Shown: piece after piece, positions 73-45,589 of the stretch | How the letters are laid out: each line of letters starts with the position of its first letter | Numbering within the stretch: position 1 is the first letter of the stretch | Assembly (NCBI GenBank): GCA_040285825.1 | Contig: JAUPSS010000003.1 | Location: 3,286,001 to 3,350,000, forward strand | Length of the DNA stretch: 64,000 nucleotides | Reading direction: 5' to 3' | From: Eukaryota sp. TZLM1-RC | Lineage: Eukaryota > Protista > Metamonada: BaSk clade | Program-made: the position numbers and the translations under genes | The notes under the pieces: generated by a model | What the model was told of the DNA's origin: nothing | Database searches by the model: none | The model's input: the letters and a program-made list of their open reading frames with translations, nothing else

Positions 73-3000
73 GTGGACGAGGTCCCTCTATCTTCAACAA
101 CAGAAGAGGTAACGAGAACGGACCCGGCTCCCTCTCCCCTCAGGAAAAAAGAAACAGATGAGGTTACGAGAACGGACCCGGCTCCCTCTCCCCTCAAGTA
201 TGCAGAATTGTCCTCGGAGGCAACGAGAACGGACCCGGCTCCCTCTCCCCTCCCAATTCTAGAACCTGTCTCAAAGGGAACGAATGGAGATCCCACCTTA
301 GACACGTCTTCCCCATTAGGAGAATATGAAGAAATTCAATCTCAACTGGATGAAATGGAGGGAGAAGACGACTCTTCTGAGGAGTTCTACAAGTTATTAA
401 GAGAAAATGCGGAGGCTTACCTCGAACCAACAGATTTCTCTCTGTTCGAGCAGCTTCCCCCTTTATGGAGTTACATTCAAAAAGAGGCAGAAACGTTGGT
501 TTCCAGACCCTCGGAATGATTGGGGATACCCAAAAGGTATTGGAAATTCCCCTCAATGAAAGGAATGAACTCATAAAGGCACTCGATAAACTGAGTAGAA
601 AGACATTCGGGCGTAACGCAGAGCGCCGCCCCAGAATCTCTGGAATGGACAAAAGAATCAATGAAATGATGTCTCTTCCCATCAAAGATAGATTGGATTG
701 GAAGGCCTCCTTCCTAGATCAACACGGCAGGAGAATAAGGTTTCTCTCCATCGAGCAGAGAAGTAGGACCGACTCGGAAGACATCCTACAATCCAAATTG
801 CCTGCCTGGTTTGATCCTAACTTTGATACGGAAATCCATAATTACACGGAGCTGACAGAGGGTGCTCCCACATATTTTAGGGAATTTATGGAGCAGGAGG
901 ATAGTAGTGAACCAGACAAGCTTGAACCGGTAACACCCTGGTTTGATGCAGACGCTTTAAACAACATTCATACGGAACGATCAGCTGTATCCACGTATAG
1001 GAGCCGTCCTAACAACTACATCCAACAACATGGTAACTCGTTCACGAAACAACGAGAGTTTAGACAATGGGTAACGGGAGATTCATCCACATCTCTCCAC
1101 CTTCCCAAACTGCCTGTTGTAGCCCCCATAATTGCTGAAAAAAGCCAACCAATACAGGTCTGCTCTATTGACAGCATACCCGAACACGTTCCAACAGTGA
1201 ACGTCCCGGAACCTGTAACTAGACAAGACGTTGCTCCTTAGGAAGAACCAACTTCCTCTCAACCTATGGAATGTGAAATCGGAGAAGACATAGAGTTGAA
1301 CGGGCCAGTCGTTGGAGAAACGGCTCCTCCTCAACCCTCAGTAAGAAACTCTTCTTCCGACAGATCTATGCGTATTGAGGACCTACAATCCTCAAGAAGA
1401 GGTATTGACATGAGCATAGCTAGTAGCCTTCATAGACAGATTGATCCACGGTCTAAGGATATCGACTATAAAAGACCTCGATTATCCGCTGACGACCCTA
1501 TCAACAAAATGTCTATCATAGCTTTTCTTTTAAAATATCAAACTTGGGATAACTACGGGCGAAAGATAGCTAATAGACGCTTTGAAGCCCCAGGTCAATC
1601 AGATTGGACCAGAGCCTTTATGATAGCTACCCAGTTATTTGGAGAAGGCCAAGCAGAAATAACCCAAGCTAGGATTAAAGATCTCCCCAAACACATACGC
1701 GACGAGATCACCAGGGATACAACACAGCCTTTGGTAAGGATTGACCCAGCTATAACAGATAAGCTCGGACCCCCAATCCACCATTATGATTTATTTAGGA
1801 GCATGATGATGAGCACTTGCCCTACAGGAATATCCAGCATGATTGACCCTAGCCTTCTATCCAGATGGCAGAGTCAAGGTTTACTCGGTGTTGACTATAC
1901 CGACGCCGACGTCATGGTATTTCTGTTAAAAAGAACACAATTCACATCATATCATGAGGCTTGTACAGCTCTAATGAAGCCTAGAATAAACTGGAGAAAA
2001 ATCCACAATAGGCACGAGGCTGACAACGAGTTTGGTCGTTATGTAGAAGATTTTGGAGACGTCTTGAGAATGACCACCTACATGACCGACCTAACCATCC
2101 CCGATTTAATTAGAGGAAGTAGTGGGTTGATAACCATATCTCCCGCTCTAATAGCCGAGTACTTTCTTATGGGTTTGGACAACTTTGCTATATCGAGCGA
2201 ACTCCTCCCAGTATGGACTAGGGAATCCTTGTGGGACTCACCGAACAGAACAACTCTACTCGATTTGATATCGACAACGAGAAGACATTTCCTCGCTTGG
2301 TGTTACACAGCAGGAAACAAGCCCACAATGGATGTACTAAGGAACAGGGCTAACGAAGAAGATATTCCTTTGGGACTCACGGCGATGAGAACTTACTCAA
2401 GAGGAGTAACACCATCAGCCCAGGCTCCATCAAATCGAGCAAGACGATCAGGTAGAAAGTCAAGAGGAACCCCTCAACACAAATACATCCCTGAAAAGCA
2501 TGAACGAGAAGGGTCAAAATTCTGTACATTCTGCAGCAACGTCGAAGGTAACAATCCTGTTGGCCACACTGTATTCGAATGCAAAGATCCTCGTTGTGCT
2601 AGAAGCAGAGTCCCCAAAGAAGAAAGATTCAGATTAGAAGAACAGGAGGCGCCTGCTAGTAGAGGCAGTGTAGAAAGGGGCCGAGGTGGCCGTGGTAGAC
2701 GTGTACATAGATTCAAATTTAGAGGCCGTGGAGGCCGTTTTAGAGGTCATAAAGGAAGAGGTCAGTGCAGACCCATTTATAACATCAACACTACAGAGGA
2801 TATATCATCAAACGCATCCCCTACTGAGTCAAAACCGACCCGTTCGAGTACGGTTCCTCACAGACGGATCAACAACAGCAACCGGAACAGCAGGACAGGC
2901 AACCTACCTAATCGGGTACACATCAACGCAATCAATCACAATAAATTAACAACCGATTTAGGAAACCCAGTCAACAACTTTCCAACAGCTCAACAAAATC

Positions 3001-3125
3001 TTTTAATTCCTCTACAAATTCACCAATCCAGCTCTGATATCAACAGTATTTTTGATATTAATTCTACGGTTAGTGAAAACCACATCAGGTCCCAGCGTTC
3101 TCCATTTCTAAGACTGGAGATATGA
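73..3125 (+). pseudogene. Extended gag region, split by a frameshift near 480 and an in-frame TAG at 1239-1241
   Basis: ORFs 465-1241 and 1266-3125 share a frame. Zinc-knuckle-like CTFCS...GHTVFEC and RG-rich tract near the C-terminus. Homologous remnants at 17360-17900 and 47860-49220. Confidence 0.7.
109..252 (+). repeat. Three copies of a ~33-bp unit encoding (V/A)TRTDPAPSPL
   Basis: ACGAGAACGGACCCGGCTCCCTCTCCCCTC in units starting at 109, 163 and 220 (periods 54 and 57). A degenerate copy at ~20-50 and one reverse copy at ~49203-49220. Confidence 0.9.
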
Positions 3126-6100
3126 ATAAATGATATTGAAATGATTGCGACTATAGATTCGGCTGCGTTTTGTTCAGTTATTACTGCAGATTTAGCTGAA
3201 CAATGCCATATGTCAATCAATAGCAAGGATACTATTAAGTTCTTACAAGCTAATAACGTATCCACAAAATCGCTAGGGAGTGCAACTGGTATTCTGTCGT
3301 TCAACGTAGGAAGCATTGCGCAACAAGTTCATTATAAACATACTCTTCCCATAATTCCGGGTTCGAACAAATTATTAATAGGGACAGACATGTTAAAAGC
3401 ACTTGGGCTTCAGACGGATGATGGTCTTTTCATTAGATTTGACAAAGAACACCGCACTTTGCTAAACGCAGAATCAGAATTCGACTCTAGGATCGCTCAA
3501 CATTCGATTGGGAACTTAGATAACCAATCACCAAGTCCTTCTGATTTTGAGGAGCAATTAGCAAGATCTGGATGTGAGATAAAATTAGATGATAGTAATA
3601 ATAAATTAAAATTAACGAGTCTACTAAAATTATTCAGCGATGTTTTTAGTGAAACTCCTAATAGAAAAGGAATCGATTGTAATCCTCTAACAATCCCCTT
3701 TAGAGATGAGAATGCTATAGTACACAAGCCTGCTAGACGGTTAAATCCCAGCAAAATGGAAATAGCAAACAAAATATTTGATGAACTGATCGAAATGGGT
3801 TACGCAGTTGAATCTAATTATAAATTCAGCTCTCCTATTGTCTTAGTTATATATCCTGACGGCAAGAAACCCAGGTTAACTGGAGACTTTAGCGGTAAAG
3901 ATGGAGTTAAGGCCCATACGATTTCAGTAGAGCCTAATCTACCTAGGATTAGTGATATTTTAGAATTTTTGAGTAGAGCAAATTACATCGCCACGCTTGA
4001 TTTACCAAATGCTTTCTGGCAGATGAATGTAGCTGATAAGGATATTGAGAAAACATCAATCTCCATTCCTGGAAGGTCAATCATGTTTAAAAGAGCTTGC
4101 TTCGGATTAAAGAACATCCCAGCAGTTTTTCAAAACGTAATGATGGAAATTTTCCAAATAGACGGCGTTTTTATATACATTGACGATATCATAATAGTTG
4201 GAACGACATTCGAAGAATTTTGTAAGAGATTACAAAGAGTCCTCCAATGCGCCAGAAATAGACGTGTAAATATAGGCTTACGTAAATGTAAATTCGTAAC
4301 ATCAAAACACCCTATCGACATTTTAGGAAGTACCTTCCAGGATAAAACTAGATTTATTAGTAAGAAAAAAATCGAAGCCTTGATGAGAATCCCTAGACCA
4401 AAAACAGTGAAAGAAGTTCGCTCATTGGTAGGATCCATCAATTATATTAGAGATTGGCTTCCTAGTATTTCTGAATTAATTGCTCCAATTAACGAGCTAA
4501 TTAAAGGAAAACCCAGAATAATTAAATGGACTAGCAAGCATGACGATTACTTAAAACAAATAAAAGACTTAATAGTAAACCACATGCCCCTTGAATTACC
4601 AGCTCCGGGCAAGCGAGTATTGATAAGTACTGACGCTTCAGATGTAGCAGTAGGAGGTGTTATTTGGCAAGAAATTGAACCCTACTCCCCTGCAGAACCC
4701 CGCTAAATAAAAGGAAAGTAAAACCTTTGTCATTCTACAGTAGATTACTTACAGAAACACAAAGAAAATGGTCCACATTACAAAAAGAATTATATGCAAT
4801 ACTTTTGATTTTAACTGAAAGTTGTTTAGAAAGCTATTTGTTAACTAGACATTTAACAATTTTCACAGATCATAAAAACATTGCATTCCTGGCTACAGCC
4901 CCAGAGAAAAATAGAATTGTAGAGAGATGGCTGCCGATACTATCTGAATTCGACTTTGACATAGTCCACGAACCTGGTAAAGACAACCATTGGGCAGATA
5001 TGTTATCGAGGAATATTGATTTGGATCAAAACGAGGAAACTCCTTCTATTTGTAGCATAAATATACCAGATACTTTACTTTCAAATTACGAGATACCTCC
5101 ACTAGACGATGATTCTGATTCGGACCTTGAAGACATCCCATCAATCTATCCTCTAAGTAGACACCAAGACCTACCTATTTTTTCTTCTTGGTTCTCTAAG
5201 ATAAGATCCGAACAACAAACAGCCAAAAACAACAACGACTCGTTATTTGAAAATGCAATTCTAGATGAAAATACTCAAATTTGGAAAAATAATAAAAACA
5301 AAATTTTGATTCCAAAGAGCCTCAGAAAACAGGCCCTACTATTAATGCATGGTTTGGTTCAATCTGGTCACCCTAGTAAAAACGATAGTTTGCACAAACT
5401 ATCCAAAAGCGATTTCTACTGGCCCAATATGAGAAAGGACCTCATTAATCATGTCAAAAGATGCCCAACTTGTCAAAAAACGGCTCCAGTTAAAAGATCA
5501 AAAACGCCTTCCACAGGATCTTTATGGGCAGATCGTCCTTTTGCCAGATTAAACGTCGATACAATTGGACCCCTAAATTCCGACAACGAAGGAAATAAAT
5601 ATCTTTTAGTATTTGTAGACTCTTTTACTGGATATACAATTTTAGTCCCTCTAAAAGAACTCAACGCCTTAGAAACCGCAGATGCCTTAATTTGGAACGT
5701 TTGCGCTATCTTTGGCATACCTATGTTAATTCATAGTGATAATGGACCTGAGTTCGCCAACGAGACTTTTAAAATAGTGTGTAACAGATTAGCGATTGAG
5801 AAGAGTAACTCAATTCCCCACTATTCAGAAAGTAATGGACTTGTAGAACGTAAACATAGAGACGTTCTTCAATGCTTAAGGAAACTATTAATAGATTTCA
5901 ACGATTACGGAAATTGGTCTACATACGTACCTATATCCCAACTATTAATAAATTCTACTAAAAGCAGAAAAACTGGTTTTACCCCATACGAACTCATGTT
6001 CGGTTCTTCGATTAGCCCAAGAACAGACCCTGCTTATATATTAGGAAATTTATCCAAATTTGAAACTAATATCCCCTTATTAGATGACATCAAAATGAAA

Positions 6101-6887: not shown

Positions 6888-8030
6888 GATGCAGAAATGC
6901 AATATTTGAGTTGTTTTCTGAAAAATTTGCCGATTGGGAAGATTTATTAATGACAACGCAAAGTTCCATTGTTTTTGCATTAAATGAAGAAATTTCAAAA
7001 ATTCATACTGAAAAATGGAATCGATGCTTTCCCCAATCATTCAATGGCAATATTCTAGAAAAAAATTAATTAAATTTAAAATAAACTCTTCGAACATTAC
7101 AGAAACGATTGACTAAAATGTATAAAAATGGTCTTTAGAAAAATATATGCAGATCGGCTGTTTTACATCATGATCTTCATGCATTGCTATTGGAAAAAGG
7201 TCTGTGTGAGAACAAGTCACCAGATTCATCACTATTTGTCACCATTGTACCACAAAGGTTTGGGCTATTTAATGAAGCCTTTGTATCAGAAATGAGATTA
7301 TATCTGAATTTCCTTATTGACCAACGTCTATTGAAAGAAACATGTATTTGATCTAATTCACCACAGCTCACTTTGCGTCATGCTTTAAATTGCCCCAAAT
7401 TAATTACTTATCGTTCTTAATTACATGATACTGTCAGGGACAATATGTTCTTAGTATGGCACGAACTGCAAGAATCTCGTGTATCAAAGAGCCTCTGCTG
7501 AAGGAAACACTGTCATTAAAGCAGTTTGATTCTGATGATAGAGGTGATATATACTGTGATTGGATTGATAACTCTGAACCTGCTGTTGATTTTGTCTCCT
7601 GTAATGATGCAAATGATACTTGGTTTACAACAGAAAACTTAATCCTGTAGGTGCTCTTGAATTTAAAGCTAAAGAAAAACATAGAAAATGAGACAAAGAT
7701 ATCGAAGAAGCTAATACTGGTAGAAATACACCACTTGTTTTTATTGCTTTCCCATTTTCAATAAACGAAACACTATCATTAGAAGCAGGAATTTCTTTGA
7801 ATGATTTCAAAAACATGGTTCAAGAAAAAACAATGAAAAGATTTGATATCTCTGTCGAATTCAATTTGCTATAATTACTAGATTGCCTTTCAATCGAAGT
7901 AGAGAAGCTTTAGCGAGACAGCAAGCAGATCAAGATTTCAGAGAGGAAATCTTGGTTCAATAAAATTCGTCCCATTAGTTCTGATTTAATTTTACTACAT
8001 TTTGTAGTTCATTACAAATCAAATTGATCA
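6888..8030 (+). mobile_element. RLE-type non-LTR retrotransposon 3' remnant (family A)
   Basis: RGDIYCDWIDNS..VDFVSCN / EFKAKEK restriction-like endonuclease motifs; CCHC remnant; 3' tail shared with 41447-42357, 51001-51185, 54756-54919 and 32720-32880. Confidence 0.8.
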
Positions 8031-23699: not shown

Positions 23700-24980
23700 G
23701 TGCAAAAGCGTCCCCAATCTTTTATCAAATCAGCTATCAAAATTAATAATTTTATAGAAGAAGCTGAGGGAAGACATTTAATGCTATTCCAGTTGTACGT
23801 CATGAAACTCCTGGATTTTTTGAAGTTGATAGCCAAGGACTATGGGGTATTTTGCGTTCTTTTTTTTACAAATGATGAAATTAATGACATGAAAAATAAT
23901 TCGGAGTGGAATTCAATAGCTGACATTCAACATATGACTCCAGAAGAATTAAATTTATTTTATTCATCTTTTTTTGAATTTAATAGACCATTTACTAAAA
24001 TAGGCTACAAATTTAACAACACCATAAAAACTGATGGTTTTGCAGCCTGTATTGAGCTTGCAAGAGAGGATGGTTTGGGCATGTCCTTCAAGATTGATAG
24101 TGCAAAGTTTGCAACCACTGGAAACTATTTGGATGATTTGGATGTTGCATTTCTATCATCAAAACACAAAGTACATATTGACCCGGGTAAAAGTGATTTA
24201 TTTTATTTATGTAGTCAAAAAAGATTCAAACTTAACGCAAAAGTCCAATTAAAAAGAGATAAACAATATGAATGGCTGAGATTAACAACATTGGAGTGGC
24301 CAAGGGTATCGAGAGTTCACCAAAAACTCAGAAAATTGAAAAAGAAAGCGTTTATTTTACAAAATGGAATCACAGTCGAACAAACAGAAACTGTATCAAA
24401 AGAATCATCAAAATCTTCCATTTATAATATTTTCTATTCTAATGTTGCTTCCAAGCTGATAAACATGACATTTACATTTGATTACTACTGTTTAATGATA
24501 TGGCAAGATATAAGATATGTCCATCATCAGAAAAAAGAGGCTAAGTTATTAAAAAGAATGGCTGAAAAGCAATGGAAACAAGAAGACACTATCCTAATGT
24601 TTGATGACAATGGCAATAAGACAAAGAATTCAAAGCATCATCGATCAAGTAGAGGAGTTGGATGGACAAATTTCTTTAAGAGAAATGGTTACACAGTATG
24701 TTCAGTTGATGAGAGAAACACATCTTCGAAGTGTGCAGCTTGTTATAACCCAGTAAATGTATTTCTTGATGTTGAGAATTCTAGACCATGGATGAGAGAG
24801 AAATATCCTACTGTGAAATGTCATGCTTTGTTAAGATGTCGATCTGAAGTTTGCAGAGAAGAATGTGATGGAAAGGATTAGGTATGGAATCGTAACAAGT
24901 TAGCATGTATCACCATCTAGGCAATTGTAGATTATTTTGTAGAGGATAGTGTTGGTGATAGGCCTTCATCCTTGTCTTAA
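23700..24980 (+). pseudogene. Fanzor (TnpB-like RNA-guided nuclease) pseudogene, lineage 2
   Basis: KTDG (WED), IDPGKSDL (RuvC-I), VDERNTSSKCAAC (RuvC-II plus Zn), HALLRC....C. In-frame TAG at 24879, then VWNRNKLA (RuvC-III D replaced by N) and RPSSLS. Confidence 0.85.
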
Positions 24981-25200: not shown

Positions 25201-25896
25201 CTAAAAAGCATCGTGAATGCGCTTTCGACTATCTAGATATCTTTGGTGTAAATCATCCTGGTCCTTGGTGGGAGGAAAATAACATAAAACATGGGGATAA
25301 TTGCGGTAAAGATTCTGATCATCCAAACCGTAACCGAGGATCCACAAATCAGTAAAACGCTGATAAAAACAGTAGTCTGCAGGTGGCTCTGACGTTGGCT
25401 TGCATGTGGACATTAGAGTACACGACTTGATGTCATCAATAGGAAGTGAGAATGAAGAAGCTAGAGACTGCTTCGTAACGGTGATGGTTCTTCCAGAATC
25501 AAACAACTCGTCTACAATGAGAACCCTCTTGCCCTCAAAGTCACTGTGATAGAGGTGGGTTAGATCCAACGAAACGGATCCAGAAGATGCGCGCTTCTTA
25601 CCATAAGAAGATGCTCTGACAAAATGGAAGGTCACTGGGAAATTGAGGAGTCTACTGAGATCTGTCAAAAACCAACAAGCTCCATTCAATAGAGCAATAA
25701 TGCAAACTTCTTGACCATCATACTCCTTGTTGAGCTGGTCTGCCAATTGTTGGGTACCAAAAGCCAATTCCTCCTTTGTGAGTAAGATTTTATAGACGGC
25801 TGAATTAGGAAGATCTTTGCGGGATGCGAAGAACTCTGACTGCAATTGCTCTATTGGCTTATTGGAAATGGCACAATTAAGAGAAGGACATGTCAT
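25201..25896 (-). CDS. hpt: Hypoxanthine/guanine phosphoribosyltransferase
   Basis: IALLNGA, RASSYG, VLIVDELFDSGRT PRPP-binding motif, WILGYGLD...YRNYP. Confidence 0.9.
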   Translation of the reverse strand: MTCPSLNCAISNKPIEQLQSEFFASRKDLPNSAVYKILLTKEELAFGTQQLADQLNKEYDGQEVCIIALLNGACWFLTDLSRLLNFPVTFHFVRASSYGKKRASSGSVSLDLTHLYHSDFEGKRVLIVDELFDSGRTITVTKQSLASSFSLPIDDIKSCTLMSTCKPTSEPPADYCFYQRFTDLWILGYGLDDQNLYRNYPHVLCYFPPTKDQDDLHQRYLDSRKRIHDAF

Positions 25897-25898
25897 TC

Positions 25899-26321
25899 TT
25901 ACAGATATTGTCTATAATAATGAAATAAGTGTCCTTTTTACACTGATGTATTTTTGATTCCTTGATAACCTTTTTCTTTGAACCTGCTTCAACCTTGGCT
26001 CTCTGTAGGTATTCTGGTCTTTTTTCATCATTTACATGTGCTTCCTTCACGGCCAACGTATTCATGAAAGCATTTCGATCTCTATTGCACACACTTTCGC
26101 ATGATTTACACGTGGTAAGCCCGTGACCAATAGACATCCCATGCCTCTTCCATGGTTTTGGATTTCTGCACCATCGGAATGTCTCAACTGTTTTCTCCGC
26201 TTTCTTACATTCTAATCTCATCAATCAAAAAGAACTTATAACCAGCCTCTTTAAATACAATTCTCAAACTTTTGCTTTGGTAGGTTATTTGAATTTCATG
26301 TGTTTTCGTTGTTCCCAGTCT
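25899..26321 (-). mobile_element. Fanzor element 3' fragment (lineage 1), 5'-truncated
   Basis: Close nucleotide match to 39517-39985; HGLTTCKSC..NRDRNA..RPEYL; shares the exact 3' terminus ...GACAATATCTGTAA. Confidence 0.88.
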
Positions 26322-27045
26322 TTGATAATTATTTGGCTGGTTGTCATTCAAGAAACGAAATAATAAACACAAAGTTAATTTCAATTAATAAGACAAAATA
26401 ATGCATTTCCAAAATCAATTATGAAAAATAATTTTTTAAAGTCAAAGTCAAAGTAAAGTTATTGTGTTTTATGCATGATCTATTAAAAAAGTATTCAGAC
26501 ACAAATACTTCCCACTGTATGACGATTTAGTTGTTTGATCAGCATTTATATTTGATGGAAAACAATTCAACAATAAACTCCATTAAACTCTCTTTGATGA
26601 ATTACCCTTCTCAACAAACTTTGAGCTCTTCTTCTTTTTTTCGTTGAATAAATTGAGTAAAAATTTGAGCAAAAGAATTCCATTGTTCTGGAGATCATTG
26701 TGATCAGAAGCTGTGTTTTCTCACTCTGGATAAACATGATGCCTGTGCGCAACATTCTAAATTTGATCTCCAAATCACTAAAAAACCCTTACCTACACAC
26801 CACTATTAATTGCAATATGTTTAAAAACAATCAATTGTCTGTTGTATTCAATTCCATTATAAATCAGATTTTGAATGTTACCACAGAAATTACAAATCTC
26901 CATTACTCACATGTTGGTGATGTAAAACCCTTTGAAACTGCTTTTGAACTTGTTCAATGTGTCTCACAGTGAAAATGGGGTTATTTTAAAGTTTCGTTAC
27001 CCTAATTAAATTTGTTAAATTAATAGATTGTATTCAAATTTCTTA

Positions 27046-37317: not shown

Positions 37318-37690
37318 TTAAAAACAGTCTCCCTGACAGTATCATACAATGAGTTATTTAGGACAAATGAGAATATGGCGTATTGTGAACTGCGATGAAT
37401 TGAAACAAAAACATGTTTCCTTTAATGGAATTAGGACAATTGGAATATTCAACTATATTTTCATTTTTGACACAGACTCTTAAACTAACTGCACATAGCC
37501 CAATCCTTCGTGGTAAAATGGTGAGATATAGTAAAGAATCTGATGACTCATTCTCACATACAGCCCTTTGCATTAAGAATGAATGATGACCTTGATCCAA
37601 AACACCTGAGCTGCACATGTTGTAAAAAATATCATCTTCATACATTTTGGTCATTTGTTTTTGTAAAATTACAAGCGACGTGACCATATA
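37318..37690 (-). mobile_element. Family A-like non-LTR internal fragment
   Basis: LQKQMTKMYE..CSSGVLDQ..CENESSDS matches 7095-7440 and 41480-41840. Confidence 0.7.
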
Positions 37691-38868: not shown

Positions 38869-39513
38869 TTAATACAAGCTATTCCACAATGGCAATGGTA
38901 TTTTTGAATTTTCATACTGGTTGACAAAGTCTAACACCTCATTATGACCCTCCTGAGCCAAATCTTTACCTTTTTTTGTTACAATAAATCCTTTTGGTAA
39001 TAGATTGAGTAGTTTTTCACGACAATGGTCATAGACCATTTTAGTTAGTTGATCATCAGTTGCAGCTGGACATGAATGTTTGGCATACTGATGGCATCTC
39101 TCAAGACCATGCTTTCCCAATGCATCTATTCTGTCAGCATCAGATACAATATCCAAACATAGCTGTAGTGGGGGAGAAAGTAATTGGCGGTGTCCATTAA
39201 CCTGCTTGGAAAATGATATGTTTGGAATTAAAGTCAAAATATCACTCGCGAGTTCTGAGTCATATAGAGAAGCAATAAACGAGAATAGTTCATCGTTGCT
39301 GATAGTGTTATATTTGTGATCAACAACATCATGCACGAGAGCAGTAATACATATGACTAAACATTGGTACTCTGATAGGTGAGGAGTGTTGTCAATGATC
39401 TTCAAACATGTAGCAAATACTCTTTCAGCATGTGAAAGGTTGTGTGATGCATCAAAAGAGGAAGTATGTAGACTGACGAAGTCCTTTATTTTACTAAGCA
39501 AGACGGTGTCCAT
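38869..39513 (-). CDS. HD-domain metal-dependent phosphohydrolase
   Basis: SHNLSHAERV, ALVHDVVDHKY and IVSDADRIDALG motifs. Confidence 0.9.
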   Translation of the reverse strand: MDTVLLSKIKDFVSLHTSSFDASHNLSHAERVFATCLKIIDNTPHLSEYQCLVICITALVHDVVDHKYNTISNDELFSFIASLYDSELASDILTLIPNISFSKQVNGHRQLLSPPLQLCLDIVSDADRIDALGKHGLERCHQYAKHSCPAATDDQLTKMVYDHCREKLLNLLPKGFIVTKKGKDLAQEGHNEVLDFVNQYENSKIPLPLWNSLY

Positions 39514-39516
39514 TAG

Positions 39517-39660
39517 TTACAGATATTGTCTATAACAATGAAATAAGTGTCCTTTTTACACTGATGTAGAGGGTTTGAGTTTTTGAGAGGTGGAAGATTT
39601 TCTTCTTGATACCTTTTTCTTTGAACCTTCAACAACCTTGACTCTCTGTAGGTATTCCTG
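39517..39660 (-). ncRNA. Putative Fanzor omegaRNA scaffold overlapping the ORF 3' end
   Basis: Terminal 52 nt are conserved with 25899-25950 (one mismatch) and diverge immediately after TCTGTAA. Short hairpins AGTGT/ACACT and ATTGT/ACAAT. The 5' boundary is a guess. Confidence 0.45.
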
Positions 39661-41446
39661 TCTATCTCCACCATTTACATGTGCCTTCAAAACTGCCAAC
39701 ATTTTTAGCTAAGCATTTCGATCTCTATTCCACAAACTTTCGCATGATTTACACATGGTAAGCCCGTGACGAATAGACATCTCATGCCTCTTCCATAGCC
39801 TTGGATTTCTGCACCATCAGAATGTTTCAACTGTTTTCTCCGCTTTCTTACAGTTGAAACAACAGCAACTGGTTCGAAACTCATCAATCAAAAAGACTTT
39901 ATAACCAGCCTTTTTAAATAGAATTCTCAAACCTTTTCCTTTGGTACGTTCTTTGAATTTCATGTGTTTTCGTTGTTCACAGTCTCCAATTCCAATAACT
40001 ACTTGACCTGGATCACCAATTACTGATTTGAATCTCTGGATCATTATCGCCTCAGAGCTTGTGCGATTTATCTCAGCCCACCATCTTAGTTTCCTATATA
40101 TTTTTTGTTGATAGATTCCACCAACAACACTATTCACATAATTCTTTTATTTAATATAATCCATAAATCTATCAAACCTGCAGCGTTTGGCATTGAATTG
40201 GGATAAAGTTGCTTCCCATTCTGCTACGGATTTCGTCGTGTGATCATTGTTTCTCAAATTGAATGAGTAATCAATTTCGTGGGGAATATTGATTTCTTGA
40301 GGTACTTTTCCTCTTAATGAACTAATTGTTCTTTCAGTCATTTGATTAATTACACTTCTGTTTGGATCCATCCTTTGTTCTTGCTCTTCAGATGGTTCAT
40401 AATTGGATAGATCAATTACTCTACCAGTAGAATTACTTATTGTGATAAGAGTGTCATTCCGTATGATGTCTCTTATTCTTTTGAATTTGGAACTTTTCGA
40501 CTCAAATCTTCGTTGATTTTGAATCTACCTTAAATGAACATATTTATCTCTCTCAGGTTTTTTTGAATGAGTCATTCCAGTAACTAAATTGGCAGAAAAA
40601 TAAAGTAGATCAGCTTTTCTTGGATCAGCAGCAGTAAGGGTCATATCTTGGAATTCAGAAGGATTGATGCTGGGGTCATCAATATATTTTTCTTTACCTT
40701 TCAATTCTTTTGCAGTTACTTTGTACTTTTTCAAGTCAATTCCAGATTGAATGAATGATACTGCTATTCCATCAGTCTCGATACTAGACATGATGTACTT
40801 CGAATTTGCTGAATAAAGTTTAGTGTTTTTAATCTTATTCATTTTCAAAAAGGTATTCCGTAAAACCAAATCAGCAGCTTGATTATTGCATTGGTAGGAA
40901 GATTTTTGACCAAGAACGTTCTTGAATTCGACAAAGAACAAGTCCATTAAACTTGTCTTGTCAATTCTGATATACGAGGGAATACAAGAATTCTTCAAAG
41001 GCAGAGCATGAAAGAATTTGCTCTCCTCATCTTCTAAATAATTATTAATATAAAACATTGCCCTCAAAAAGTAATTTTATTTTGATGAAAAATCAAATTC
41101 TGAACATTTTTCCCTTTTAGAATTTCTGGGAAGTAAAAAGGGTTCCGGTCATTAATGAAAAGCGAAGTAATTGATGGGACTTTGTTTCTCATTGAAGAAG
41201 TTTCACCATCAATATCTCTTCTTCCTTCTAGAAGGAGAGATTTAACTTTGCTGATGAATGATGAGAAGTTTTTCTTATCTTGCATTTTCAGGATATTGTT
41301 GTTTCTCTTAACATCATAAAAACATCGACAAACCGATCCAAGAAATCAAAGTAATGTTCCTGGATGTTATTTTTGAAATTCACAATCAGTTTGTCAATAG
41401 TGTAATACAAAATATTACTGATTCCTTTTTTTGATAAAACTTTTGG

Positions 41447-42357
41447 GAAGGAATTTTTTAAATTTAAAACCACTCTTCGAACATTACAGAAAAGATTGAC
41501 TGGAATGTATGAAAAAGATCTTTATAATAATATATGCAGCTCAGCTGTTTTAAATCAAGATCTTCACTCATTGTTATTGGAAAAGGGTGTTTGTGAAACC
41601 CAGTCATCAGATTCTTCACTTTTTGTAACCATTGTACCACGAAGATTTGGATTGTGTGCCACTAATGAAGCATTTGTAACAAAAATGAGATTATGTTTGA
41701 ATATCCCCATTAATCATTTATTATCAAAAGAAAAATGTATTTGTTCGAATTCGCCTCAGCTCACTTTGCGACATGCTCTGGGTTGTTTGAAATTGATAAC
41801 TAATCGTTCTTCATTACATGATGCTGAAAGAAACACTGTTTTTGAATAATTTTGGTTCTCATGACAGAGGTGATATATACTGTGATTGGATTGATAATTC
41901 TGATGCTGTTGTTGACTTTGTCTCATGTAATGCTGCAAATGACACTTTGTCTCACAGAAGAAAATTTAATCCTGTAAGTGCTCTTGAATTTAAAGCTAAA
42001 GAAAAACAAAGAAAATATGACAAAGATATCGAAGAAGCTAATGCTGGTAGAAATACACCACTAGTTTTTATTGTTTTCCCATTTTCGATAAACGGAAGAC
42101 TATCAGTAGAAGCGGAAACTTTTTTGAATGACTTCCAAAAAATGGTTCAAGAAAAAACAATGAAAAGATTTGATACTTTTTAGGGCGCTCTCGGATTCAA
42201 TTTGCCATTGAAATAGATTACCTCGGTTTTTCAATCGAATTAGAAAAGCTTTAGCTAGACAACAAGCAGATCAAGCTTTTGTAGAGGAAATTTTGGTTCA
42301 ATGATTTTCGTCCCATTAGTTATGAATTAATTTTTATTAGGTGTACATGTTAAATAA
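41447..42357 (+). mobile_element. 5'-truncated family A non-LTR insertion with 13-bp TSD
   Basis: ATAAAACTTTTGG at 41434-41446 and 42358-42370; the Fanzor frame (LVPKVLSKKG) is restored on removal. Confidence 0.92.
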
Positions 42358-42739
42358 ATAAAACTTTTGGAACAAGTTAATCTTTAAAATGTTGATGATA
42401 GGATTCCAACAATGGCACACAACGAGAATTTTGCATGACTGTTTCTGTCTTTGCGCTAAGGGAACTTTCCTCCTCACTTTGAGACGTGCCCAAAAGAAAG
42501 GCGTCACGAAAAAAATTGCGCTTAAATTTTTGGTAAAATATCATTAGGTTTTAAGTCAAAATGATGCAAATAATAACCACAAATAAATTCTAAACCAACA
42601 ATTGAAATTTCCTAACACCTAATTACTGCCTCATCGATCACGTCAAGCATTTGCGGATCTCTGATGACATTTTTTAGACTGTTTTTATAACCATTATTAG
42701 GTTTATGTTTAACATTTTCATGAGTTGGTCATTGTTAAA

Positions 42740-43480
42740 GAAATTAAATAATTTCATGGTTAATTCTGTATCCCTCGAACAATGAAGTTCAACTGCAGTT
42801 CTTCTTTGGGATAAGGAAAAATCTGAGAAGGGATCATCTTCTTGAACCTTCCAGTACTTTGCAATATATTGAGGATCAAGGTCAATTTTACTTTCCCCTA
42901 ATAAAATATTAGAAACTGTTTTTAGTTTCCGTGGTTGATAATAATTTGTGTAAATACTATAAGTATCAACAACAAATCGACCAGAAATTAAGGGGTTCAA
43001 GTGTTTGTGATTCAATTCTATTAAATTTGAGCTATAGTATTGAACCCATCTACTAGCATCGATTTCACCCTTAAAAAGTTCTCATTTTTCAGAACGTTTC
43101 ATAAAATGTGGGATGTCAAATTTCAGAATATTGAAACCACATTTTATATGAGGATTATAAATTTCTAATAATTTTTTCAAATGAACTTAGCAATTCTTTT
43201 TCAGAAGAATGATGATATTTTTATCATCAGCTTTGCAATAATGTTCATTTCTGCTTGTTGATTTTTCTACAAGATCACAAAAACAAAGATTTAATTCAAT
43301 CTGTTCTCGAGTGAAAATATGAGAAACACAATTTGCAACAATCTTTCTTGTAGATTGACAGTAAGAGATGGAATTTTCTTTTGCAGAAATGACAATTATT
43401 TCTTCCTCATCACTGAGCTTTTTTCCCAACACCAAAATTTCAATATCAAAATGTAAATTTCTTAGAGTGGATTGTGTTTT
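42740..43480 (-). pseudogene. Stand-alone family-B DNA polymerase-type 3'-5' exonuclease domain (no polymerase domain)
   Basis: ExoI LHFDIE (~43445); SEKELL..F..YNPHI.CGFNILKFDIPHF ExoII (~43110-43200); GRFVVDTY; KLKTVSNILLGESKIDL; ExoIII HCSRD (~42775). Confidence 0.8.
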
Positions 43481-43689
43481 GACATTTGATGGTGTCACTA
43501 AAGGGTATTTAAATTGAGTCAGTGGATTCTCATTGAAAAGGGTTTTTACACGTTTCAAAGGTGTGCTCAATGCATCAGCTCGCCTTTTCCTTTTTTGGCT
43601 TCTTGTACAGAGGAGCATTTCTTTGTCTCAAATGATTTTCGTTCAATGTCAACACAGTTATAAAAACATCTTTTGTCTTGATTGACAAA

Positions 43690-44673
43690 ATGTTTAACAA
43701 GAGCTGAATCAATTGAATTCAGCTGATTTGACAAAAACAAATTGATCATTCCTTTTGCAAACAATGTGGTGAAGAATCTACAATCATACAAATTAGCTTG
43801 AAAAAATTCAGATATATTCTGACTGATAACCAAATTTATCAAAAATTATTGAATTATTTTTTTGATGTTGTTCTTCATTATGACGAAGACTATCGAAAAG
43901 AAAAAATTTTACTGTTCTGGATTTGATCCAGAATGCAACAAGTACCCAATGTTACCCAATGGTAAATTGTTCGTCAACAGATGCAATCAAATGTGATTGA
44001 TGAAATGCATCAGTATAGGGCAGAGGAATCAATGTAATTTTTCGTCGCCAGAATTGATCAATTGTGAGCAAAAATCCTCTTGAACAAATCCCCGCAAAAA
44101 TAATAGGGCTGATGCGATGGGTTAAACCAGTATTTTGTTATGTGACAATGGAGTTGATGACTGATTGATAAAGTTGTTGATCGAATCAGTGATTTGTTCA
44201 TCATCTGACCATTTGTCTTTAACATCATCACTTTGTTGCCCTCCACCTAATAAATTAATTTTTTTAAAATATATATTGTAGTTATCAAAAGGAATCAAAT
44301 TTACATAATTTTTAATAAAAAAATAATAGAATATTTTATCAAATAGGTCATCAATCTCTCCAAAATAAACACAAAATGAATTGTTCCCTTCTATAAAGAG
44401 GCTGTGGGTGGAAACACATACAGCTTCCAGGTTCGTGCCCCAGACACGACCAGCAAATTCATAGATAATGTGTTTTCTTGAAGGAATTATAAAATGTTTA
44501 TTAATCAATAATGAACAATTAATTAAAAAACAATTTATAAAAACTTTTTGATGGACTATTTGGACAAGTTGACCCTTCTCAACCATTAAAGTGGAAGAGT
44601 CAATCTGAACAGGTAGTATATTTTCAACCAAATGGTAAGGAGAGTCTTCATGAGAAAAATGTGTCCAAACCAA
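43690..44673 (-). pseudogene. Ulp1/C48 (SUMO-protease-like) peptidase domain remnant with N-terminal extension
   Basis: WSDDEQI (~44200), HWVLVAF (43951), FDSL (~43890) and QLNSIDSA (~43710) in the order of the C48 W..DE.I / HW / D / Q.N..DC motifs. Catalytic Cys position reads Ser; frameshifted. Confidence 0.6.
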
Positions 44674-44739
44674 TATCAGAATTACTGAACTAGTTCGCCC
44701 GAACGTTTGGAAGGGTTGCGAACGTTCGGAATTTTAACA

Positions 44740-45180
44740 TTTTTTTATTTACTCTTTTTATTCAAAAGAAATTATCAAAAACTAAAAATCATTTTCCTCA
44801 AACTGCACATCTACCATTGACAATTTACCTACAGCATTTTTTCATAAAATCTTGTGATAATAACCAGCTAGAAACAAGGCTATACATTCCTTTAAAAGTA
44901 GAAAATACAATTCTGTTTTGCCAAAAGGTTCGGTCAAATATTCTTCCAGTTCTGTTTTTGACAATAGATGAAACATCGTCTTCAAAAGATAACGCAGTTT
45001 TACCCAAGGTTCCAAATAAAGAAAAAGCAAAAGGACGAAGAAGATATTGAGTATGTGAGTTGGAATTCATTGATATTGATTTTTTCAGCATATTTGATAA
45101 TTCTAACATTGGTCCAAACTGTCAATTTCTATCAAAACGCACTTCTGGCTTTTGACCAATTCATGCAATCTTGATAGCCG
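44740..45180 (-). mobile_element. RLE-type non-LTR 3' fragment (family B-related)
   Basis: PFAFSLFGTLGK..RTGRIFDRTFWQNRIVFS parallels 53184-53447; A-rich tail. Confidence 0.7.
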
Positions 45181-45589
45181 TTAAGCATACTTTAGTTCTA
45201 TCACTATATGTTATCACGATCAAATGATAGTTAAAGCAGCAAAATCACAATACGCATACAGGTACGCAATACATTAAAAAACAGTTATCTACGGGGTCTC
45301 CGGAACCCACAATACAGAGACCATTGTAATCTTTTTAGACCAAATAATCTTTGAGCCATCTTCGTGCTACTATTCCATGTCTTTGTTGATAACTAAATTA
45401 TCCAAATCTACCTGATGATATTGGAGATCCAACCCCTTTTCGAAGTATCACGTGCAATTTCTTCTAGACCGTATGGTGAGGACACAGGACTTTGAATGAT
45501 CACGTTTGATCATTTCAAATGTGCTGCAAATCTCTGAATACTATGATACCTTTATTGACCCGTTTGTATGATTTAATTATCGAAAATCC

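Follow-up and report, generated by a model that had tools for sequence, protein, structure and literature searches.

The DNA considered here is a 64,000-nt stretch (the window) of assembly GCA_040285825.1 from TZLM1-RC, the type strain of Skoliomonas litria (PMC11603281), and positions refer to the window unless a sister locus is named. From 44.7 down to 39.5 kb the window is spanned by a chain of short minus-strand open reading frames (ORFs) in shifting frames, which is a dead, inert and 5′-truncated member of a Skoliomonas repeat family of about 4.6 kb. The master copy of this family was very likely one gene that joined a leader, a protease, an exonuclease and a Fanzor1 nuclease in a single frame, which is the best explanation of the data as a whole. 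A preliminary description of the window had noticed three collinear minus-strand modules at about the positions given below, an observation that is confirmed by Pfam and structure matches of the window and its sister ORFs, and its interpretation of them as a decayed copy of a fused element is supported; the end trimming and deSUMOylation that it attributed to the modules are activities that we infer.

Sister copies and the reading frame of the family

The longest Fanzor fragment of the window was searched against 1.84 billion representative proteins and gave two classes of matches, a few fragments at 71–82% identity and about 70 stand-alone Fanzors (600–740 aa) at roughly 30%. The close fragments, and likewise the later matches to the leader and the exonuclease, all come from GCA_040285825.1; they were traced to ten loci on its contigs (L001–L010), whose content was determined with the window element as blastn and tblastn query. 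L009 is full length, and so is L007 apart from three internal deletions. L002 runs from the leader to the 3′ end and is interrupted by a long terminal repeat (LTR) retrotransposon and a long interspersed nuclear element (LINE), and L001 has the protease, exonuclease and Fanzor, interrupted by two LTR elements. The protease has been deleted from L008, which keeps the leader, exonuclease and Fanzor, L010 begins with the end of the protease and continues through the exonuclease and Fanzor, and L006, a copy of a 30%-diverged subfamily, comprises the C-terminal half of the exonuclease and the Fanzor. The repeated linkage that a fused element would predict is thereby found, with the exonuclease–Fanzor junction present between different flanks at seven further loci (L001, L002, L006, L007, L008, L009 and L010) and the protease at five of the ten. 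Copies without the upstream modules, which the preliminary description had regarded as potential evidence against the fusion, do exist in the form of four Fanzor-only copies (L003, L004, L005 and window 25897–26350), yet they begin at consensus nt 2606, 3019, 3058 and 3130, all within the Fanzor ORF, and the four different start points mark them as 5′ truncations rather than as a shorter form of the element.

For the family consensus, copy-specific insertions were excised with the guidance of their target duplications, ten copies were aligned and the majority base was taken, with L009 left out. The resulting 4,599 nt consist of 155 nt of leader DNA, a single frame from the ATG at nt 156 to the stop at nt 4541, and a tail of about 58 nt. 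The frame encodes, in order, a 204-aa leader, an Ulp1/clan-CE-like protease, a basic linker, a PolB-type DEDDy exonuclease and a Fanzor1, and its 1,461 codons correspond well to the ORF of about 1,500 aa that had been anticipated for an intact copy. Its sole internal stop is at codon 425, which reads TGA in two copies and CGA in two including the window, a difference that is usual CpG decay. L009 is 95.5% identical to the consensus ORF and keeps its frame apart from three point-mutation stops and two frameshifts, with 12 of 12 catalytic residues retained. This best-preserved copy lies at L009 9977–14426, with its 5′ leader DNA at 7307–7449 and a LINE in the 5′ untranslated part. Upstream of the point at which the window copy starts, L007, L008 and L009 share about 328 nt more, comprising the 155 nt of untranslated leader and 58 codons and beginning with TTGAAATTG.

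The junctions between the modules can also be followed in individual copies. First, the exonuclease/Fanzor junction of the window (42700–42736, minus strand) was compared with L001, L002 and L006, against which exactly one base is missing between 42715 and 42714; restoring it, as the preliminary description had suggested, gives a continuous exonuclease–Fanzor frame. Next, three unreconstructed ORFs cross the borders, namely P0101, an annotated NCBI protein of 491 aa that starts at Met1, takes in the leader, protease and linker and reaches ExoI, L001:158–1009, which runs from the protease Cys to ExoII, and L007:12098–12526, which begins in the last exonuclease helix and extends over 130 residues of the Fanzor. 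Finally, the junction in L006 falls within one tblastn segment. The distance from ExoIII to the first Fanzor-aligned residue is about 22 residues.

Polintons carry both a clan-CE protease and a PolB, and the genome is full of nested insertions, so that a Fanzor might have landed in a PolB gene or in a protease-bearing Polinton-like element and the pieces might never have cooperated. Such an accidental adjacency appears extremely improbable, since the junction is identical base for base at the seven other loci with their unrelated flanks, the 30%-diverged subfamily included, and the consensus frame crosses both junctions. A truncated PolB gene hit by a Fanzor, as the preliminary description had considered, is likewise not what the copies look like: no polymerase, integrase or capsid remnant was found in any of them, the stand-alone Fanzors begin to align just past ExoIII at the distance given above, and the exonuclease matches PF03104, the family of RNA/DNA-primed PolB exonucleases, and not the protein-primed one. 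Segmental duplication of one ancestral locus is also argued against, as the 3′ neighbour genes differ between the loci.

The window copy itself spans 39514–44659 (minus strand), as delimited by blastn against the sister copies and by the consensus alignment. It lacks family nt 1–328 and is 94.1% identical to the family consensus over the alignment, and relative to the single-frame consensus it has accumulated 8 indels that shift the frame, 11 in-frame stops and a 911-bp LINE insertion. The insertion, the 3′ part of a LINE at 41447–42357 (plus strand), had already been recognized by its flanking target site duplications; these are identical 13-nt copies at 41434–41446 and 42358–42370, and the insertion is absent at this site from all sister copies, L001, L002, L004, L007, L008 and L009 being uninterrupted there. 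The 5′ limit was previously placed at 44730 and has to be revised, because family sequence starts at 44659 and a GC-rich hairpin further upstream is therefore not part of the family. The region outside the family (44660–45102, minus strand) consists of 86 nt of unrelated DNA (44660–44745) with the hairpin at 44693–44729, followed by a LINE 3′ end at 44746–45102.

The Fanzor1, exonuclease and protease-like modules

Judged by its sequence, the C-terminal module is a Fanzor1. In the window its N-terminal part lies at 42358–42715 (minus strand), upstream of the LINE insertion, and the remainder at 39556–41446 (minus strand), as identified by structure matches and by phmmer against stand-alone Fanzors. 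The ORF at 39817–40137 (minus strand) matches the Fanzor1 structure of Spizellomyces punctatus (SpuFz1, 8gkh) with E=1.8e-9 and the Parasitella Fanzor1 with E=1.4e-8, an L002 ORF matches PpFz1 with E=2.7e-8, and the nearest full-length relative, P0007, matches SpuFz1 with E=1.5e-41. Stand-alone Fanzors align over nearly their whole length with residues from about 720 to 1435 of the consensus (phmmer, E down to 1e-111), and the consensus contains the motif D-X(125-275)-[TS][TS]-X-X-C4 zinc finger-X(5-50)-RD of Bao & Jurka 2013, in which D1106 is followed after 250 residues by TS and the C4 zinc finger, and this after 5 more by RD. The window copy still has the corresponding D, E, Cys and D codons, with the RuvC-I D at 40626, the RuvC-II E at 39978, the zinc finger at 39867–39742 and the RuvC-III D at 39723, ahead of the stop codon at 39558–39556. 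Between the main family and L006, the proportion of nonsynonymous differences (pN) in the Fanzor is 0.27 and that of synonymous differences (pS) is 0.45 (p=1e-8).

Most of the Fanzor matches of at least 600 aa align from about residue 200–300, which indicates that they have no long N-terminal extension, and the protease and exonuclease modules are found in 0 of the 77 nearest Fanzor relatives among the 1.84 billion representative proteins. Four large proteins (P0008, P0047, P0048 and P0066) were rejected as spurious Fanzor relatives, being bacterial and animal Ig-repeat proteins. An exonuclease-free Fanzor lineage is also present in the window, as a 393-codon ORF at 23700–24881 (plus strand) with a C-terminal zinc finger and 26% identity to the fusion family, and a 190-nt fragment at 45118–45306, also of an exonuclease-free lineage, shares 92% identity with the 3′ end of an L006 Fanzor gene that encodes 637 aa.

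Pfam searches of the window ORF fragments one by one returned nothing useful and NCBIfam returned nothing, and the domain calls for the other modules were therefore taken from relatives. The middle module (42716–43507, minus strand) is by sequence a member of the PolB exonuclease family with a complete DEDDy 3′–5′ exonuclease domain. PF03104 (DNA_pol_B_exo1) matches an ORF of L001 with 38.6 bits (E=1e-9) and P0100 with 32.7 bits, against a curated cut-off of 23, and the matching sister ORFs are about 87–90% identical to the window at the DNA level; a PolB exonuclease is moreover present in 26 of the 30 nearest ESM Atlas clusters. All five catalytic residues, the D and E of ExoI (consensus D470 and E472), the D of ExoII and the Y and D of ExoIII, are present both in the consensus and in L009. 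In the window ExoI is at 43447 (D 43447, E 43441), the ExoII D at 43117 and ExoIII at 42784 with its D at 42772, and the ExoIII Tyr (42784) has become His. A search of the PDB with the ExoIII piece of the window gave no match. As proposed in the preliminary description, the exonuclease is unaccompanied by a polymerase, and no palm, fingers or thumb domain was found in any copy. Between the main family and L006 its pN is 0.37 and its pS 0.50; that pN is below pS in both modules across this comparison implies that the fusion persisted over considerable divergence.

The protease module (43592–44238, minus strand, with frameshifts and stops in the window) is probably a clan-CE protease, as far as its motifs and the profile matches of sister ORFs allow such an assignment. 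An L002 ORF scores 21.2–22.1 bits with PF02902 against a cut-off of 20.7, and C48 is the top family in every slice that has any Pfam match, except for a near-tie with C5 in one slice; a slice of P0101 gives a weak match to Peptidase_C5 (PF00770, adenovirus protease) with E=0.1. The best PDB matches, XopD and NopD, belong with all the PDB matches of the module to the Ulp1-like effectors. The order of the catalytic residues is canonical, with H301, D320, Q353 and C359 in the consensus and in L009. Of the C48-like motifs listed in the preliminary description, the W, His and Asp positions hold in the window (W 44211, His 43951, Asp 43894), but the string Q.NSID does not, the catalytic motif being QxNxYDC at 43800–43780 with the Gln at 43800 and the Cys at 43782. 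Searches of the PDB with a profile of the protease piece and with P0101:200–430 gave no matches, nor did a search for homologous proteins with the L002 protease ORF.

Upstream of the protease, the window retains a leader remnant (44239–44659, minus strand; consensus codons 59–204) in frame with the protease, the leader frame being open over 183 codons. The leader closes directly ahead of the protease with LLGGG (window 44247–44239, consensus residues 200–204), and LLGG-G is the only Gly-Gly between modules; neither the step from protease to exonuclease nor that from exonuclease to Fanzor contains one. Adenovirus-type clan-CE proteases cleave at (M/I/L)-x-G-G-x, a pattern that the end of the leader fits. 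Leader residues 1–204 have no match in Pfam or the ESM Atlas, and a ubiquitin-like domain with a terminal Gly-Gly, considered for the leader, is kept as speculation only, having no support in Pfam, the ESM Atlas or AlphaFold. Between protease and exonuclease lies a basic linker (43544–43591, minus strand; RKRR ... KRVK in the consensus) that by inspection only resembles a nuclear localization signal (NLS).

Several points weigh against a single gene with three working enzymes. No fully intact copy is among those recovered, the 1,461-codon frame is a reconstruction out of decayed copies, and the fusion architecture is read from genomic sequence. Selection is suggested for the exonuclease but falls short of significance (p=0.06 over 108 codons). 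Of the three domain calls that of the protease is the weakest, and a marginal one: the complete domain in P0101 stays below the Pfam cut-off, with slices at 12.7–15.8 bits or nothing, the matches to XopD and NopD are not significant (E=0.4–1.7), and the AlphaFold2 models of the protease ORF (mean predicted local distance difference test score, pLDDT, of 45.8) and of the leader (pLDDT 40.5) are unusable. In addition, engineered fusions of TREX1, TREX2 and T5 exonuclease impaired the Fanzor2 editor MmeFz2, so that a benefit from tethering is not a given (PMC12923547). The weak protease scores, together with a leader that matches nothing, would fit an N-terminus that is a degenerate or structural extension without enzymatic function, leaving only the exonuclease and the Fanzor to matter. 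This is rather improbable, as the His, Asp, Gln and Cys are kept in their canonical order, the slices with a Pfam match favour C48, and the frame stays open for 420 codons in DNA whose richness in AT makes stops common.

Possible mode of action and mobility

By analogy with TnpB and Fanzor, the Fanzor nuclease would be directed to its target by an RNA transcribed from the element's 3′ end and would cut there. The exonuclease would remain tethered to the Fanzor, as no stop, 2A or Gly-Gly site lies between them, and its most likely substrate would be the 3′ DNA ends, or else the nicked strand, at the RNA-guided cut. A break trimmed in this way would be hard to reseal and would favour a repair that copies the element. 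The protease would serve either to process the polyprotein or to free host proteins of ubiquitin-like modifiers.

The main alternative to action on DNA ends keeps the single ORF and has the exonuclease act on RNA, trimming the 3′ end of the guide (omega) RNA from the 3′ end of the element. RNase D and Rrp6 are examples of DEDD exonucleases that trim RNA, and Fanzor guide RNAs require defined ends; the nearest families by sequence, however, are DNA proofreading domains of family-B polymerases, and RNA trimming appears quite improbable.

The polyprotein might also be divided into a leader, a protease and an exonuclease–Fanzor product, or further, either by its own protease or by ribosome skipping, in which case the fusion would exist at the level of the gene only. 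Viral clan-CE proteases cleave at Gly-Gly-X, and the leader/protease border provides such a site in LLGG-G. The NLS-like basic patch stands just ahead of the exonuclease, and Fanzors usually have an N-terminal NLS (PMC10530073). No NPGP/2A motif (D(V/I)ExNPGP), however, was found in any frame of the window or the ten loci, nor in the consensus, the protease/exonuclease and exonuclease/Fanzor borders have no Gly-Gly, and the exonuclease runs into the Fanzor within the short distance already noted, and we regard such a division of the product as less likely than not. An elaborated form of the single-gene reading would be a self-processing polyprotein, in which the clan-CE protease cuts LLGG-G and perhaps other sites and frees an NLS-led exonuclease–Fanzor1, the exonuclease chews the cut 3′ ends and the element is copied in the repair. 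Such a scheme is tentative and, taken as a whole, unlikely; if true, the element would be a naturally occurring "cut and process" editor that needs no transposase to spread and that settles at the starts of genes.

The absence of a visible transposase, pointed out in the preliminary description, holds for the family, the single ORF filling nt 156–4541 of the consensus, and terminal inverted repeats are absent (score 8 against a shuffle mean of 8.4). The 3′ end, in contrast to the variable 5′ ends, is kept and exactly bounded. In all 11 copies that have it, the element stops at ...CTGTAAC(A/TA) immediately ahead of an ATG (window 39514/39513 and 25897/25896; L002 13760, L003 11277, L004 11316, L005 11258, L006 11118, L007 14125, L008 13456, L009 14423, L010 ~19681), and in 10 of the 11 this ATG opens a called or long same-strand host ORF. 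The docked genes are unrelated to each other and include a phosphoribosyltransferase, LSM, HSP70, ARS2 and others. Five of 12 copies (L003, L004, L005, L006 and window 25897–26350) are 5′-truncated at differing points with the exact 3′ end kept, and several 5′-truncated copies occupy the entire gap up to a divergent upstream gene. Retention of the 3′ part could mean either that it serves the downstream gene or that insertion runs from the 3′ end.

In the window copy the non-coding 3′ tail (39514–39555, minus strand) ends two bases ahead of an ATG (39513) that opens a host ORF, likewise on the minus strand (38869–39513); this ORF is intact over its 214 codons and shows an HD-like motif by eye, and Pfam gave no match for it at E≤0.001. 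The second family copy in the window (25897–26350, minus strand) is heavily deleted and 86% identical to the consensus, retains the last ~150 codons and the tail, and adjoins an intact phosphoribosyltransferase gene at 25201–25896 (Pfam E=5e-17).

Other mobile elements have in turn used the family as a target. The LINE family of the window insertion, which makes target duplications of 12–14 nt, recurs in other loci (L002–L009) and at 44746–45102 of the window, and a related inverted copy lies at 37491–37675. Copies of the fusion element have been hit by it repeatedly: the window copy, L001, L002 in its tail and L009 in its leader DNA. L001, L002 and L010 are interrupted by LTR retrotransposons, whose duplications measure 4 nt.

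Relation to known systems

Fanzors are eukaryotic RNA-guided nucleases in development as compact genome editors, and engineers have fused exonucleases to RNA-guided nucleases to alter repair outcomes, with mixed results. In the present family evolution has built and kept a PolB-type exonuclease–Fanzor1 fusion with a protease in front, over two subfamilies and at least a dozen insertions. No exonuclease or natural protease fusion is mentioned in Bao & Jurka 2013, Saito 2023, Jiang 2023 or Xu 2024, or was found by full-text searches on Fanzor, and the protease–exonuclease–Fanzor1 fusion is a natural design without a match in the searchable literature, where exonuclease fusions occur only as engineering. 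The value lies in the family with its complete consensus, the window copy being only a fossil: it offers a natural design whose linker, orientation and type of exonuclease can be put to the test, a model in which to study the movement of a transposase-free Fanzor element, and a new setting for captured Ulp1-like proteases.

Each of the modules resembles a known family and departs from it in context. The C-terminal ~740 residues align end to end with Fanzor1 (SpuFz1, PpFz1, GtFz1; Bao & Jurka 2013; Saito et al. 2023), with matches to solved structures, the D...TS-xx-C4...RD motif and the place at the 3′ end of a mobile element. Described Fanzor1 genes, however, encode proteins of 600–750 aa and are carried by transposons equipped with a transposase (Helitron, Mariner, Sola, MuDr and others), whereas here a gene of 1,461 codons has the Fanzor as its C-terminal third, preceded by protease and exonuclease, in an element without a transposase. 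The exonuclease shares with the family-B polymerase domain (PF03104) ExoI (DxE), ExoII (NxxxFD) and ExoIII (YxxxD) in order, but the polymerase N-terminal, palm, fingers and thumb domains are missing and the domain stands between a protease and a nuclease. With the Ulp1/SENP (C48) and adenain-type (C5) proteases the protease module has in common the His-Asp-Gln-Cys order, the weak repeated PF02902 matches and one to PF00770, and, like the Ulp1 domains of plant Mutator-like elements (MULEs) and the Polinton protease, it is carried by a mobile element; it differs in its borderline similarity and in its in-frame fusion to an exonuclease–nuclease.

Two prokaryotic systems offer partial parallels to the whole. 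The IS1341-type insertion sequences that carry only TnpB are likewise RNA-guided nuclease elements without a transposase of their own, and the Cas2-DnaQ of CRISPR adaptation, which trims spacer precursors, is a natural fusion of a DEDD exonuclease to a component of an RNA-guided system, although one that is not joined to the effector nuclease. A further likeness is with engineered proteins, TREX2-Cas9 and the TREX1, TREX2 or T5 exonuclease fusions of MmeFz2, in which an exonuclease is tethered to an RNA-guided cutter (PMC12923547; PMC13370227). These proteins were made in the laboratory, their exonucleases are unrelated to the present one and the Fanzor2 versions lost activity, whereas the fusion in the Skoliomonas family is natural, with an exonuclease that is of PolB type and placed at the N-terminal side of the nuclease.

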